Assembly (NCBI GenBank): GCA_002104945.1
Contig: MCFH01000008.1
Location: forward strand, 806,001 to 870,000
Direction: 5' to 3'
Length of the DNA: 64,000 nt
Origin: Piromyces finnis finn
Lineage: Eukaryota > Fungi > Neocallimastigomycota
Notes under the pieces: generated by a model
Database searches by the model: none
What the model was told of the DNA's origin: nothing
What the model saw: the letters and a program-made list of their open reading frames with translations, nothing else
Shown: positions 54,176 to 64,000 of the stretch, in pieces
How the letters are laid out: the number at the start of each line of letters is the position of its first letter
Position numbering within the stretch: the stretch's first letter is position 1
Translations under genes and position numbers: made by a program

Positions 54176-56442
54176 ATGGAAGACTCATATCAAACTGCAA
54201 TTAAGATTTGGGAACAAATTAATCTAGTTGAATTACAAAAAACACTTGATGAACAAGGAATAAAAATTATTAATAATCAAAAAGAATCTTTAGCTTCACG
54301 GAAACAATTAGCAGAACAAACTAGAGATTTTAAAAGATTATCAAATGATGAAAAATTAATAAAATTCAAAACATTATTGAAGGCGTATCAAAATGAAATT
54401 GATAATATTACTAAAAGAAGCAAAGTTTCAGAAACAGCCTTCCTAAATGTATATAAATTATTATTGGAAGCACCTGACCCTAGTGCATTAATTTCTTCTT
54501 TTTTGGTAATAAAATATTACATCTATATTTATTTTTACTAAAAAAATATTTTATTCAACATATATATTTTAATTTATATTATTACTAAAATATAAATTAT
54601 ATATAATATATAAATATATATTTTCTTATTTTTCTTATTATATATATTATATATTTTAATTATTGTATTATAATTAAAATATAATAAAAACAGGAACAAA
54701 ATAGTAAAAAAGAAGATTATGAAGTTATAAAAAAAGAGAATGAAAATTTAAAAAATGAACTTAAAAATGTAAACAATGAATTTAGTGATTATAAAATTAA
54801 AAATTCAAATGTTTCAGTCTTAAAACAACAAGTTATGTTGTATGAAACTAAAATAGATGAATTAGTAAATGAGAAAGTAATAGAAAAAGAAAGTGAAATG
54901 AAAAATATAATTGATGAAAAAATTATGTTGTTTAAAGAAAGAGAACATTTCCTTCAACGTCAAGTAAATCAATTAAAAGATCAGTTAATGGCTTTGCAAG
55001 ATAACCATGATAATACGCAAGCAAAAATTATAGACCATAGTCAAAAGTATGAAGAAGAGGTTGCGGGTAAATTAGCAGAATTGGAAATAATAACAAATGA
55101 TTTGGAAAATGCAAATATGAATGTAGCAAAACTTCAACAAGAAAATGAAAACTTAAGACAACAATTAAATAAAATTTTAAATGAAATATCTGATGATACT
55201 AGTTTTAAAAGTAAAGAAAAAGCAATTAATGATAATTTTTCATTTGCGAATGCAGGAAATTCTGAGGAAGAATTAATAAATTTAAGAAAGAAATGTCAAA
55301 CACAAGATGAAGAAATTAATCAACTTATCAAATCTGTAGAAAGACAAAAAAATATAACAAGTAAGAATGAATTAATTTTTAATTCAAAAATAAGTGATTT
55401 AGATGCTCGACTTTCAGAAGCAAATGAAACTATCTCAAAATATAAAGCAAAACTCGAAACTTATTCAGATTATAAAAAAATTAAAGAAGAATTAGAAGTT
55501 TTGAAATCTATTGAATTTTCAACAACGGTTGAATCTAACAATACCCAAGAAGAAAATCTAGAAAAGTTAATTATGGCAAAAAATAAAAAATTACAGGCTG
55601 AATTAACAGAAAAGAAAATAGAGGTCGAACAATTAAACACATCATTGACTCAAACAACCAAAAACCTCGAGAATTCCAATATAAAAATTAAAGAACAAGA
55701 AAACTTAATATCAAAATTAGAGGAAGATCTTCTTAAAGTTAATACACTACAACCTTCAAAGTATAAGAACCAAACTATTCAAGAAAAAAATAATAGTATT
55801 GTAAATAATGATGAAATAGGTGCAGCATTAATAAATCAAACAACAGAAGGTCCAAATGATGAAAATAATTCCGATTCTATTATTGCTATTTTAACAAGTC
55901 AACGTAATAGATATAGACAACGCAATCAGGAATTAGAACAGCAAATTCGTAGTATTAATGATAAAGGAAAAGATGTTGAGTTAGAAGTCCAATCATTAAA
56001 AAATGATAATATTAAATTATATGAAAAAATAAGATATTTGCAATCCTTTAATAAAACTTCTTCATATAATATCGCTGATAGAGGCTATAATCGTAATAAA
56101 AAGGATCAATCATATTCTGTAGATATGCAATCTCACTCATACAATGATAACGATATATCTGAAAAATATAAGATGATGTATGAAGATTCTATTAATCCAT
56201 TTAATGAATTTAGAGGCAGAGAAGAAAATAGAAAGTATCGTTCTCTCAATACAGTAGAAAAGGTTACATTAAATATTACAAAAATATTTATGGCAAATAA
56301 ATATTCAAGAATTTTTTTCTTAGCCTATATATTGGGACTTCATTTACTTGTATTCATAGTTATATTTAGAAGTATTGATTTATCTGAAATAGAAACACAG
56401 TCATCATCACCATTTGATGTTAAATCAAATAAGTTATATTAG
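54176..56442 (+). CDS. COY1: Golgin CASP / Coy1 (CUX1-CASP family) with C-terminal transmembrane anchor
   Basis: Exons 54176-54505 and 54694-56442. N-terminal LQKTLDEQG...SRKQLAEQTRDFKR...LKAYQNEIDNITKRSK..FLNVYKLLLEAPDP; CASP_C ILTSQRNRYRQRN...DNIKLYEKIRYLQS...YEDSINPFNEFR; TM FFLAYILGLHLLVF. Confidence 0.93.
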
Positions 56443-57694: not shown

Positions 57695-60600
57695 TTACTG
57701 AATCGTTACTCTCGTACCATTTGGTTTTGAACGAATTCTTGATGCTGGCGCATTTGGTTCTAAACCATTTCTTCCTGGCATACCTGAATGAATATTTTCT
57801 GTACGAATTGAACTCTTAATATCCATTGATTGAAGGACTTGACTTTGTATAGATTGGTTAGATGGTCTACCATTACGGCTTTTCTTTGGTTTATTTTCTT
57901 TTCTTTTAAGTAATCTTTGGTACACTCTATTACGTAAATCTTGATCTATAATTAATGGTTTTTTGTAGTCTTCTGGTTTTATTCTATCTGCTGGGAATAA
58001 ATCATATTGGTATATTGTTTTAGTAACATTTTCAATATTATTAATCATATTTTCACGCTCTGCATCATCTGGGGTATATTGAGCAATTTTGGTATAAAGG
58101 ATAGCATTATAATAAGGAGTTCTCAATTTTGGTGATGATTTTTCATCAATTAGACCTGTACGCCATTCAGCTAATGCATTATTAACATTACCATTAATAA
58201 GCTGATAAAGACCTCTACATAAAGCTAACATTGGCAATGCAATTATGTATGAATTAAAGAATCTTTCTAAATCATGGGTAAGGGTAAATAATATACCTAA
58301 ACAAATGATACAATGTTCAGTTTCTTCTTCAAAAATACCTTGATCGTATGCTAAGTATAAAATATTAATGAAGTGTGGTAAACTAACTAATGTACCCCAA
58401 CTTGCGTGACTTAATCTATCAAGAAGACGTACAACACGGGCAAGTGAATTCCAGGTATCTTCTAAAATTTCTATATTAAATCTAAAGAAAACTTCGCATA
58501 TTAAACCATAGAAAATAAGTTGTACACTGAAGTTACCGGTATTAGGGCTTTGACCTAATGAGCATATCTTCTTGATCAAAGATAAGATAACTGTAATTTC
58601 TTCTTCTTCATTTGAGGAAGTGTAATTGAATAATATAAGAGAGAGTGCTAAACATTGGGTTTTCCAAAGTTTTCTTTTATTAAACATTTCAACAGCTGTC
58701 TTCATACTTCTTTCAATATATCCTCCATGAAATTCAGTAAAGGATTTAAGAACCCAAGCTTTATCACCAAGATACATTTCTCCTAAATCACCTGACATTT
58801 TAATAAGTGTTTCCCAGTGATAGAATGCACGTTGCCAATCACCAAGAGCAAAGTATGCCTGAGCTAAACAATCATAAGCATACAAGTGATAAGAGGTAAT
58901 TGGGTTATAATGTTCAGCTAAAATTTCTTCTGCTTTTTGTAAAGCTTTCATACTTACTTGAGTCTCATTAACATTATTAATATTTGTAACAATATCTAAA
59001 CCATACATAGACAAGATTTGAGCATAATTTGGATCAGGTTCTAAGTAAGAAGACCATTTAATAGCCATTTTAATAGCCATTCTAAATTGTGTGAGTTTAT
59101 GTAAGGTGTTATATGTTTCACAAAGAACAAGAAGATATCTTCTATTAATCATTGCATGGCGTTTTGTTTTCTCGGATTTACTTTCTGTTGTACTAAAGTT
59201 TCTTTTACATATTAAGTAATGATTAAAGTTAATTTTCTTTTCTGCCCACCATGTCTGAAGTTTCTTTTCTGGTAAACGAATGTTAATTAACAAAAGAGCA
59301 ACAACAATATGATTTTCAGCTTCATGGTATTTTAATAATGAAAGATAAGCTTCTGCTATTTGACAATGCCATTCACTAATTCTCCAATTACTAATAGTAA
59401 ATGGGAATGTATACTGATCAGTTTCATACATTCTAAGTAACATTCTGTAATATTTTAATGTTTCAGTCATTGACTTAATCTTATAGAAGTATTGACATAC
59501 CATTTCAAGATACTTTTTAGTATTGACTTTATCATTTGTATGAGAATAATGCTCGTAAATAGTAGATAACAATTCTTGATTTTTTTGTGTATCCGCCTCA
59601 TAAATACCTTCATAATATTTAGCATAATACATATGAATTTCTTCTCTTACTTGGTTAGTCATCATTTTGTAAATTGCTTGTTGAACCATATCACTAACAA
59701 AAGAAAATACAGATTCTTGGTAATTATCCTTTTCCTCCACCACAAGTCTTAAGAAGTTATATTTATCATATTCAGCAAAGAATTCTTCCATATTAGAGAT
59801 TTCTTCATCATCCTTTATATTTAAATATGGGAATTTTTCTTCGGAATAATAATCTTGAGTAACAAGATATCTTTTAACATCGGATAATTTGAATTGAGCT
59901 AAGACCGTAGCAACTCTTAAGAAGTTTTGGAAATTTGTATCTAATTTATCAAATTCATTAACAACTACAGTTTCAATACCACCAAATGGAATAACATTTT
60001 CAAGTTCTTGTGGATCTTCAGAATCTTGATGGTATCTTAAAGAACCATCAGTAGCAAGATAAAAGCTTGGCAACTCCAGAAGGAAAGAAATCATTCTTTT
60101 AATGTATGTTGGAGCACCTATTATAAATAAAATTTTATATGTTAAAATGTTAAAATTTATATTTGATATTTAAAACAATGTAATCATAATATACTATATA
60201 TGCTATAAAATATTTTAATGAATAATTATTTACCCTGAGTTCTTTCATAAATAATTTCTAAAATTGATTGAGAAACACCAGTACATTTTTGGGCAAATTT
60301 AACGGTACATGCATCTTTAATCATTTCACATGCTGCATCTTCAGAAATTCCATTAAGTGTAATAATAACTGCTCTTGGCATTTTTAAAATTCCTTGGAAA
60401 ATTTCTAATGATTTTTCATTAGAAGGATAACTTGATTCTGGATAGGTTACAAGAGTAATTAAAATCTTCGCATTACACTTTAAAATACATTCTGTTAATC
60501 TCCAAGAGAAGAAATCCATGAATTGGATTTGGTCTATACACAGAAGAAGTGGAATTTTATATGAAAGCTTTACTAAAATTCTAATAATTAAACTATTTAA

Positions 60601-63600
60601 TTCGTTTGCCTGAATTTGTGGATCAATCTTTTCATCTTTATATTTTTCAAGTTCGGAGTATATTATTGAAAATAACGAAATGTATTCACGACTTTCACCC
60701 ATAAAGTTTAATAATATGGTTAAATCATTTTCTATGGATGACTTTTCTTCGGTTAATAGATCAACGGAGTTTCTTTTCTTTTTATCATCTTCAATACCAT
60801 TTTTTTTATTAATATTTGAAGCTCTACCCTTTGTAAGCTTTTTAGCTAAAACAATAATATCTTGAAGGATTGATTTGTATGTTGAATATGATACTGTCTT
60901 TTTTGCCTTACGAGGTGCACTATATCTGTTTTCAACAATATTTATTTAATCATATATTTTAATATATTATATCAAAAAATCAAATTAACTATATATATTA
61001 ATATTAAGAGTTTATTCTTACAAAAGATTAATTCTATTGGAGTATGCTTCATTCATCATATGCTTTGCTAATAAAGAGGTACCATGACCTTCAACACCCT
61101 CAATTATAATTAATTGTCCATTATTTATTTCATTATAGTTTTTAATAATATTGTGAAGCTTTTCAATTTCTTTTTGTCTACCAATTAATTCAATATCAAG
61201 AGATTCATGATTCTTTTTGTCTTTTACGTCAAGTTTATTATATGAGCTTCCAACTGGCGAGAAAAGTTTTATAGGTAAATCAGAAGTTTTTATTGTGATG
61301 GAACCTCTTTCTTCATATGTTACATTTTCTTTGGTTAATTTACATGTTTCTTCATCACAAATAATAGTACCATTTCTAGCTTTCATAACAATACCATCTA
61401 TAGTAAAATAATTATTAGCATTAATTTTTTACAGATTTTTTAAAAAATTAAATTTAATATATCAAATTTAAAATTACTTACTTGTAATTTTGTTCAAATT
61501 ACCATACTATTTAAGTTATAATAAATAAATATTGTAAATATTATATTTATATATATAAATTATTTAAGTATTATATACTTACAACTACATATTCCATATT
61601 TTTTTCGGAACCCTGTTTTTCATTTACAAAAAAAAAAAATAAATAAATAAATATACTAACATTATTTTAATATTTAAAGAAATTACCATTGTTCCAATCC
61701 ATCCATCTCCTGTAGAAATTGCAATTCTAATATTTTCTGTTATTCTCTTAGTATTATTAATTATTTCGAAAGCTACATCAATACCAATTTGGGCATCATT
61801 GTCATGTGAATATGGTGGTAAACCAAAATCAATAACAATGATAATACCATTTTCATCAAAATCAATGTGTCGTATAATACCTTCTTGATTAATTAAACTA
61901 CGATATATAGCATTAATAATTTCTTGAGCCATTGAAAAATCTGAAGGAGATGATATAACAACATTAGAAACTTTAACTAATAAAGTCGTTATTCTTCTCC
62001 ATTCACTAAATTGATCTATTTTTAGGTCATGATTAATTTTATATATTACATTTTCATGAACAAAATGTTTCCATTTATCGAAAACATTTCTGCTGACTTT
62101 AGCTAAGTCAATAGAAGGATTACTTTCATCATTTTCCACAGTTACATCTATACACAAATCGTCTTCGGAAATATATTTATCATAAAGTCTTACAATATTA
62201 ACTTCATTATTTTCAAGAATAACAGTACCTTTAATATGGTCTACGATATTTAATTGAGTAACATGAACAAAACGTGAGAGTGTTTTCATAGCGTTATAAG
62301 TAATAGCCAATTGACCTTTATTTTTTTAAATATATTTACAATTATAAATTTATTAATAATTGATATTAATTCTTAAAAAAAAAAAAATTATATTTTACCT
62401 GGCTTGGCCAAATCAAAAATTTTTTCTAACTTTGAAAGTGAATTTCCTTTTTAAATATTAAAAGAAAATCAAATAATTAGTAATTATTACAATAAACTAA
62501 ATTTATTTATTTCTAGTATTTTACCTGTAATGGAATAATTCCACTTATCTGGCGGACCTCCCAAAAATAAATGATATAAAGTGCCAGAACCGATAGCAAA
62601 TTTTAATAAAAAGGTTTCTTCAATAGGTTTATCATAGTCGGGAATTTTTATAGGATAATTATTTAATTCTCTTAGCATATCCAATGCACATTGGCATGCT
62701 CTTAGTATACTATATGCTTTTACATTTTCAAAATCTTCTGGTGTATCGCATTCAAGTTCTTGTTGACTATCAATTGACCATATAATAATAATTTTATCTA
62801 CTTTTGTAATAAATATAATATAATATTACATTGTCATTATTATTGTTAAGTTATTTTTTTATTATTTTAATATTTTTATTTACCTGAAAAACGAACTGTT
62901 TTGTATTATAAATTTTTAGTTTATATTAGAAATATATTATTATATTAGTATTTTTATTTTGAAAGTAACTAGTAATCAAACAATATTAAACTACACTATT
63001 ATTTAATTAGAAATTATTTTATCGGAAATTTTTTAACAGCTAAGTTTTCTAGTTTAAACTATTCTAGACTATTTATATTACATTTAATTTATTTTTATAT
63101 ATATTTATTTGTAATTTTCTTATCATTTATTTAAACTTTTATTTAAATACTAATATTAATTTTGAAAAATTTTATATTCATTACAAATAAATATAAGAAT
63201 TGCTACTTTTCTTATTTAATTGCATATATTATTAATGAAATTTTTATTATAAAATATTTAAATTACCTATATCTCCATTGTACTTCTTTATTGTTTTACA
63301 TAACTCACTATAATAAGAATTTAGTGTTTTTGAAAATATTTCCCAATTATCTTTTTCGATGCTTTCTATTTCATTTTTGATATTATCATACCCTTTATTT
63401 TAGATTGATAAAAAAATAAAATGAAAAAATAGATATATTAGTTTATTATAATTTCCATTAATTATTTAATTTAAATTTAACGTAAAATTGTTGTTCATTT
63501 TTTAATAATTTATTTATATTTATCAATGGAAATATAATTAATATATTTTATTTAATTATTTTGTTTATAAATTATTAAAGGAATATATATTAACCTGAAA

Positions 63601-63745
63601 CCTGAACTGACATAACTACTCCATAACATTCTATAAAATTTGGAACAAGTGATTCTTCTTTAGCATAGTAAAGAAACTCACGTAAATTAACAGGCAGAAA
63701 TGGTAATACCGTATTAAGTTCTTCCCTCTGAACATAATCTCCCAT
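57695..63745 (-). CDS. Soluble adenylyl cyclase (ADCY10)-like protein: two class III cyclase domains + STAND/AAA NTPase + helical repeats; catalytic residues degenerate
   Basis: Many exons. C1: GVVMSVQVS, YNGDIVRFS, LKFAIGSG. C2: SEWRRITTLL, FGLPPYSHDNDA, IAISTGDGWIG, GTIICDEET. NTPase: LIGRQKEI, EGVEGHGTS, LLLCIDQIQFMDFFSW, IYERTQG, FVSDMVQQAIY. Confidence 0.85.
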
Positions 63746-64000
63746 TTTTTATTATTATTATTATTATTATACAATATTATAAAATAAATAAAAAAATATC
63801 TATATTATAAAAATAATTACAACTTATAATGTCTATTAAACAATGCTTTTTTTATGTAATATATAAATATAATTATATTTTAATCTTCAATTTATATATC
63901 ACAAGAATTCAAAAAAAAAAAAAAAAAAAAAGATAAATTTATGTAATAATATGTATATAAAGAAGAATATAATAAATAATAAATTATAATAAGAATAAAA

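Follow-up and report, generated by a model that had tools for sequence, protein, structure and literature searches.

Introduction

Cyclases of the soluble adenylyl cyclase (sAC) type, such as human ADCY10, have been studied as sensors of CO2/bicarbonate, pH and ATP, while their long C-terminal P-loop/TPR region has yet to be given a clear role. We describe a sAC-like gene of the anaerobic fungus Piromyces finnis (Neocallimastigomycota), in which the cyclase domains have lost catalytic residues. The gene lies on the minus strand of a 64,000-nucleotide (nt) stretch of DNA (contig MCFH01000008.1 of assembly GCA_002104945.1, positions 806,001 to 870,000), hereafter the window, and its product is called the window protein. 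In public databases, its orthologs carry only the names "hypothetical protein" or, by automatic assignment, "class 3 adenylate cyclase", and a literature search covering sAC in chytrids and Neocallimastigomycota as well as cyclase pseudoenzymes yielded nothing on this protein and no account of a dead fungal sAC paralog. What is new here is a pseudoenzyme member of the known sAC family.

In common with human ADCY10 (PDB 4CLF, 8CO7 and others), the window protein carries tandem C1 and C2 cyclase domains in one chain (TM score of 0.72-0.79 for the model of its ortholog), apparently with a P-loop-type module and a TPR-like tail behind them, and retains the equivalents of Asp99 (D98) and Lys144 (K163). 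It differs from the human enzyme in sharing only about 15-16% identity, in the substitutions D47Q, N412K, R416G, K334H, T405V, K95R and R176E, and in the replacement of the Walker A Lys by Thr, so that cyclase activity would not be expected from its residues. The nearest relatives outside the anaerobic fungi are sAC-like proteins of chytrids and blastoclads (Batrachochytrium dendrobatidis, Blyttiomyces, Rhizophlyctis, Chytridium and Sorochytrium; E about 1e-105 to 1e-75). These proteins likewise have no Walker A Lys (GGQGLST) and no equivalents of Arg176 and Lys334, but their cyclase catalytic residues are all intact, and their identity to the window protein is 27-30%.

Two intact paralogs, A and B, are found within the Neocallimastigomycota (P. 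finnis ORX42041.1, Anaeromyces robustus ORX79562.1 and Neocallimastix californiae ORY82757.1). They share with the window protein the overall architecture, the degenerate nucleoside triphosphatase (NTPase) motifs, a common microexon structure and about 36-42% identity, with clade B as the sister group. In contrast to the window protein, they retain ADISG/VDVSG, KFAGDA and GDSVNMAARLM, match Pfam PF00211, and show a rate of evolution about four times higher when the same genera are compared. A further comparison is offered by the Pseudomonas aeruginosa structure 6YII, a class III adenylyl cyclase-like ATP-binding protein according to its PDB title, which was matched by fold (E 2.5e-13). It is bacterial, stands outside the sAC clade, shares 9% identity and gives a much weaker structural match (TM 0.51). 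Judging by its PDB title only, 6YII may be a bacterial precedent for a non-catalytic class III tandem.

Family Membership and Predicted Fold

Homology searches and fold prediction were carried out with single exons or with the ortholog P0007 in place of the spliced window protein. P0007, a protein of 1595 aa with 92.7% identity to the window protein, is encoded by two metatranscriptome contigs free of introns, L003 and L004. When the window exons were searched one by one against Pfam and PDB sequences, the only matches were AAA_16 (E 0.015) and TPR_2 (E 2e-4); neither PF00211 nor a PDB sequence was matched by the window exons alone or by P0007. The Pfam cyclase model remained silent on P0007, whereas the paralogs reached 39-66 bits. 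A word search with P0007 returned only P0007 itself and one weak diatom match. The search with exon 11 retrieved relatives, including P0003 on the intron-free metatranscriptome contig L001, the protein of which has human ADCY10 as its best match (E 3e-15 for C2 and 1.6e-6 for C1). When residues 1-1200 of P0007 were used as a phmmer query, chytrid sAC-like proteins were matched over query residues 34-588 with E values of 3e-105 to 2e-96, including those of B. dendrobatidis, Rhizophlyctis rosea and Chytridium lagenaria and the Blyttiomyces protein named "Adenylate cyclase type 10".

An AlphaFold model of P0007 residues 1-480 was obtained with a predicted local distance difference test (pLDDT) of 81.7 and a predicted template modelling score (pTM) of 0.83. 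A Foldseek search of the PDB with this model placed human sAC structures in all of the top 24 positions (E 6e-29 to 1e-24), in agreement with the sAC architecture that the initial annotation had proposed. Downstream of the cyclase domains, AAA_16 on the ortholog scored 31.0 bits (E 4e-07), just below the cut-off of 32.6, and the tail gave TPR_2 matches of 19-22 bits, also below the cut-off; the NTPase-like module aligned motif by motif with that of the relatives. Taken together, the two class III cyclase-homology domains in one chain, seen in the model and its Foldseek matches, and the sequence homology over C1-C2, seen by phmmer and in the starred clade of the tree described below, identify the window protein as a member of the sAC (ADCY10) family. 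It keeps the sAC fold and appears to keep the whole sAC layout, namely a C1-C2 pseudo-heterodimer, a STAND-like NTPase module and a helical/TPR tail. A comparable layout of a P-loop and a putative TPR region is known for human sAC (PMC3475452).

Loss of Catalytic Residues in the Cyclase Domains

The initial annotation, made from the DNA letters, had proposed a full sAC architecture in an intact long reading frame with altered key residues. The frame was confirmed as 11 exons encoding 1595 aa, for which 57695-63745 runs exactly from stop to start, and every motif that had been quoted was present: MSVQVSG (Q48), IVRFSVDKII (R94, D98), SKLEKI (E196), IIRHID (H354), YGNLNKITNGIVM (K430, G434) and GVEGHGTS (T539). 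The roles of the corresponding residues of human sAC, listed in Table 1, were taken from PMC12867704 (Table 1) and PMC12250328. Of the two C1 metal-binding Asp residues, the first is replaced by Q48 in the window protein and the second is kept as D98, as had been suspected; all orthologs show the same combination of Gln and Asp. The Asn and Arg of C2 that act in the transition state are replaced by K430 (Arg in orthologs) and G434. The base-recognizing Lys is H354 in the window protein and Gln in intact fungal relatives, and the bicarbonate site Lys95/Arg176, a feature of mammalian sAC, is represented by R94 and E196.

To place these changes in the family, we compared the window protein with 31 aligned relatives. 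The equivalents of D47, D99, N412 and R416 are near-invariant among them, and those of D47, N412 and R416 are altered only in the ortholog group of the window protein. At a threshold of at least 85% of the relatives, 58 columns are conserved. In 37 of them, for the most part structural Gly and the like, the window protein has the family residue; the 21 that are changed include the equivalents of D47, K95, N412 and R416 as well as G97V in the AGD loop. We also considered a swapped active site, in which C2 would supply the Asp residues and C1 the Asn/Arg pair. This arrangement was rejected, as the alignments, by our reading, place Lys at the first-Asp equivalent of C2, and Ser/Lys and Glu at the Asn/Arg equivalents of C1. 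From these residues, we infer that any production of cAMP or cGMP by the window protein would be too slow to be useful.

Changes at the bicarbonate-site Arg and the substrate Lys had also been noted as signs of inactivation. Both are present (E196 and H354), but they are not specific to this protein: the equivalents of Arg176 and Lys334 are missing from cyclase-intact fungal relatives as well, and that of Arg176 is absent from all aligned fungal relatives and most other relatives. Since intact fungal relatives do without them, these two substitutions are uninformative on the window protein.

Orthologs, Paralogs and Selection

The cluster of P0007 at 90% identity contains full-length proteins of N. 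californiae, N. lanati, N. "constans" and A. robustus. These orthologs are 92.4-94.7% identical to the window protein and have Q, K/R, G, H and T in the matching positions. At least four other species thus share the frame and the substitutions. We calculated the ratio of nonsynonymous to synonymous substitution rates (dN/dS) between the window gene and the ortholog complementary DNA (cDNA) L003, and obtained 0.053 overall (dS about 0.79), with 0.038 for C1, 0.086 for C2, and 0.049 for both the NTPase-like module and the tail. With L002, an ortholog further removed (84% identity in the last exon), dN/dS was 0.09. The question raised in the initial annotation, whether the substitutions recur in orthologs under purifying selection, is answered in the affirmative for both Anaeromyces and Neocallimastix. 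The window protein is an enzyme homolog without catalytic residues that is expressed (see below) and under purifying selection, which corresponds to the operational definition of a pseudoenzyme.

In a maximum-likelihood tree, all Neocallimastigomycota proteins grouped in a single starred clade, with the chytrid/blastoclad proteins as the sister clade. Within the Neocallimastigomycota clade, the topology was (A,(B,C)) with each node starred, the window type being clade C, whose stem measures 0.78 and whose tips range over 0.016-0.046. The tree indicates that clade C arose by duplication inside the Neocallimastigomycota, as the sister of the intact paralog B, and that its stem branch is long. 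All three paralogs occur in N. californiae and N. lanati, and B and C in A. robustus; the separate intact sAC paralogs that the initial annotation had advised looking for do accompany the window type in these genomes. Between the same genera, the cross-genus identity was 94.7% for C and 75.1% for B, and that of A was 80.5% (Piromyces vs. Neocallimastix). By these comparisons, the dead copy C is the most constrained of the three paralogs, under a purifying selection that is strong and exceeds that on the intact copies.

In the paralog A contig L001, we observed an in-frame TAA at positions 1127-1129, between C1 and C2 (EDL*IAQEAL), where P0005 of P. finnis has Gln. This codon splits the called gene into products of 339 aa and 1400 aa; a sequencing error, an allelic difference or a nonsense variant may account for it.

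The NTPase-Like Module

The motifs of P-loop STAND proteins (Walker A GxxxxGK[ST], Walker B hhhhD[DE], TRP and GxP) are represented in the window protein by GVEGHGTS, LLLCIDQ (D689, Q690; exon 10), TYP (exon 10) and GAP, respectively. The Walker A Lys, the second acid of Walker B, the Arg of TRP and the GNP motif are degenerate in all Neocallimastigomycota paralogs, including the cyclase-intact ones. The position of the Walker A Lys is Leu in chytrid homologs (GGQGLST). Among the chytrid/blastoclad sAC-like proteins P0027-P0034, the cyclase residues are intact and Walker A reads GGQGLST or GGQGTTT, again without Lys.

These comparisons modify the description of the protein as a "double pseudoenzyme". 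Both sets of motifs are indeed degenerate, but the loss on the NTPase side is common to all Neocallimastigomycota paralogs, and that of the Walker Lys extends to chytrids. Only the cyclase loss (D47, N412, R416 and neighboring positions) is, by alignment, specific to the window paralog. Because the NTPase motifs are degenerate clade-wide, while the cyclase residues are lost only in the window-type paralog, the "double" inactivation is composed of two separate events, one ancient and clade-wide and one recent and paralog-specific. The loss of NTPase chemistry in the C-terminal module of sAC appears to be ancestral to zoosporic fungi. We propose that hydrolysis by the module had already been lost in the ancestor shared with the chytrid homologs, and that it is a structural module across the clade.

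Transcripts and Gene Structure

The gene extends on the minus strand from the start codon at 63745 to the end of the stop codon at 57695, and consists of 11 exons separated by introns that all have GT..AG borders (Table 1). The coding sequence of 4788 nt has its sole stop at the end. The DNA is extremely AT-rich. G+C amounts to 22-31% across the gene and to 15-16% where introns crowd at its 5' end, and the intergenic DNA immediately downstream has 9-11%.

Expression was examined with contigs assembled from four public runs (X1-X4) belonging to three studies, which were aligned to 59900-63800. The spliced form was found on contigs of 4.9-5.1 kb, one in each of X1-X3, and on three contigs of X4, with 0-1 mismatches. 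All modelled joints were present. The letters GAAAAACGAA of exon 3 were found between the flanking joints in four of four runs, as were 29 letters of exon 7 between the joints 61506/61686, and the contigs also contain the small exon 61506-61482. Because the contigs carry every predicted joint and the letters of the microexons, the gene is transcribed and the splice model is right, which settles the exon structure that the initial annotation wished to see confirmed by transcripts. Assembled contigs may miss rare isoforms, so that a minor isoform might escape them. A canonical D.SG, N..AR or GK[ST] motif was found in no minus-strand frame of 60000-64000, introns included. One contig of run X4 showed a non-canonical joint, 62396/62854 (AC..TA on the plus strand, 457 nt skipped, shorter side of 21 letters); matching no exon of the model, it is probably an assembly artefact or unrelated sequence.

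Table 1. Exons of the sAC-like gene and residues at functional positions (window coordinates; human residues are those of sAC).
Feature	Position	Strand	Location in protein or gene	Human residue (role)	Remarks
Exon 1	63595..63745	-	aa 1-50		Start codon 63745; C1 first metal-site motif MSVQVSG; spliced contigs and alignment
Q48	63604-63602 (codon)	-	exon 1	Asp47 (metal)	Replaced
Exon 2	63267..63392	-	aa 51-92		C1 helix region to ...KKYNGDI; joints 63391/63594 and 63267 in contigs
Exon 3	62884..62895	-			12-nt microexon, encodes (V)RFS
R94			exon 3	Lys95 (bicarbonate)
Exon 4	62525..62800	-	aa 97-188		Remainder of C1
D98	62798-62796 (codon)	-	exon 4	Asp99 (metal)	Second metal Asp, kept
K163			exon 4	Lys144 (pyrophosphate)	Kept
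Exon 5	62399..62446	-	aa 189-204		...NSLSKLEKIFDLAKP
E196			exon 5	Arg176 (bicarbonate switch)
Exon 6	61687..62315	-	aa 205-414		C1 end, linker, most of C2
H354	61869-61867 (codon)	-	exon 6	Lys334 (base)
Exon 7	61583..61612	-	aa 415-424		30 nt, GSEKNMEYVV
V423			exon 7	Thr405 (adenine)
Exon 8	61482..61506	-	aa 425-432		25 nt, YGNLNKIT
K430	61491-61489 (codon)	-	exon 8	Asn412 (product release)	Replaced
Exon 9	61022..61397	-	aa 433-557		C2 end and degenerate Walker A GVEGHGTS; AAA_16 match
G434	61395-61393 (codon)	-	exon 9	Arg416 (alpha-phosphate)	Replaced
T539	61080-61078 (codon)	-	exon 9	Walker A Lys (NTPase)
Exon 10	60234..60925	-	aa 558-788		STAND/AAA_16-like NTPase module; ends ...ERTQG
Exon 11	57695..60117	-	aa 789-1595		GAP (for GNP), helical/TPR-like tail, low-complexity C-terminus; stop 57697-57695

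Possible Role of the Window Protein and Alternative Explanations

We consider it likely that the gene is a non-catalytic member (clade C) of a three-paralog sAC-like family in the Neocallimastigomycota, and that its role in the cAMP pathway would be a regulatory one or that of an assembly partner. Clade C has replaced one metal Asp (Q48) and both C2 transition-state residues (K430 and G434). The conserved pocket, keeping D98, R94 and K163, may bind a nucleotide or small ligand without turnover, or may merely hold a conformation, and the protein would act through its NTPase-like/TPR scaffold beside paralogs A and B. Several points weigh against this interpretation. The loss of cyclase activity is predicted from the residues, and the retained metal Asp D98 and the Lys144 equivalent K163 leave room for residual or altered chemistry; Gln is able to ligate metal weakly. 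The role as a regulator, sensor or scaffold is putative. The structural model is that of the 92.7%-identical ortholog and was built from a 9-sequence alignment, the Nei-Gojobori dS values (about 0.8-1.1) are imprecise in so AT-rich a genome, and the coexistence of C with A and B was seen in related genera.

The retention of D98, R94 and K163, the intact predicted fold and the very strong constraint on C1 and C2, which shows that these domains do something specific, could also be explained by a protein that is still an active cyclase or another nucleotidyl-transfer enzyme, with a non-canonical site in which Q48 and D98 bind metal and K430 replaces the functions of Asn and Arg. We regard such activity as very unlikely, since one metal Asp and both transition-state residues are gone together from positions that are near-invariant in the 31 relatives, 21 of the 58 family-conserved columns are changed, including G97V, and the Pfam cyclase model no longer scores. 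In class III cyclases, a single mutation at one of these positions is enough to lower activity by orders of magnitude. It is scarcely credible that the losses are an artefact of a wrong exon model or alignment, with the canonical residues supplied by other exons or isoforms. The key motifs do lie in or beside tiny exons (12, 30 and 25 nt) of a kind often missed by public annotation, but the contigs of four runs give exactly the modelled joints and microexons, the intron-free cDNA contigs of orthologs encode the same motifs, and no intron frame holds a canonical motif. The transcript contigs and the ortholog cDNA refute this explanation, and the splicing that, according to the initial annotation, might have restored the D, the N/R or the Walker K is correspondingly improbable. 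The same annotation had named a decaying gene as an alternative. The lost catalytic residues and the long stem branch (0.78) would suit a dispensable duplicate, or incipient pseudogene, with substitutions fixed under relaxed selection, and the chance of this is negligible: it is refuted by the 1595-aa frame kept intact across 11 exons, by a frame and substitutions shared with at least four other species, by dN/dS values of 0.05-0.09, by transcription in cultures and metatranscriptomes, and by a conservation exceeding that of the intact paralogs.

It is conceivable, if unlikely, that the protein is an inhibitory (dominant-negative) partner that pairs with paralog A or B and silences it, possibly in zoospore flagella. 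Intact paralogs coexist with the window type in related genomes, the NTPase-like/TPR scaffold is common to all paralogs, and STAND-type proteins usually self-associate through such a scaffold. On the other hand, C1 and C2 belong to the same chain, and the predicted model (pTM 0.83) pairs one with the other, which would make cross-pairing of catalytic domains unnecessary. The dominant-negative role is a special case of the preferred interpretation as a non-catalytic partner in the cAMP pathway, with no contradiction between the two. A more specific version of that interpretation, which we put forward only tentatively, is that, following the duplication inside the anaerobic fungi, the copy that gave up catalysis became a dedicated ligand-sensing or assembly subunit, responding to ATP, cAMP or CO2/bicarbonate-related signals in the CO2-rich gut, and either controlling the intact paralogs or signalling alone through the dead-NTPase/TPR scaffold. 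If this were true, the protein would be the first pseudoenzyme with its own function to be described for the sAC lineage.

The family also represents a natural experiment, in which a fungal clade keeps the C-terminal region with all NTPase motifs dead, and one paralog is without cyclase chemistry as well. Because the dead paralog is better conserved than the intact copies (94.7% vs. 75% and 80%), the sAC scaffold may well serve a function that requires neither catalysis nor NTP hydrolysis, and the window-type paralog is a tractable protein for finding it.

Microexons in Public Gene Models and the Neighboring Gene

The microexon that encodes xKFA/VRFS, just ahead of the second metal Asp, is conserved across paralogs. 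We noticed that the equivalent of the microexon at 62884-62895 is lost or mis-joined in several public gene models: P0192 is without VRFS, P0186 is one residue short, and the pattern GD..KF..D is absent from P0198, P0201 and P0224. Automated surveys of residues that rely on public models lacking the KFAG/RFSV microexon would misjudge the activity of this family.

Downstream of the sAC-like gene, and with no evident link to it, lies a convergent gene of a Golgi tether family at 54835-56442 (+), a single open reading frame encoding a 535-aa protein with a CASP C-terminal domain (PF08172, E 3e-63).

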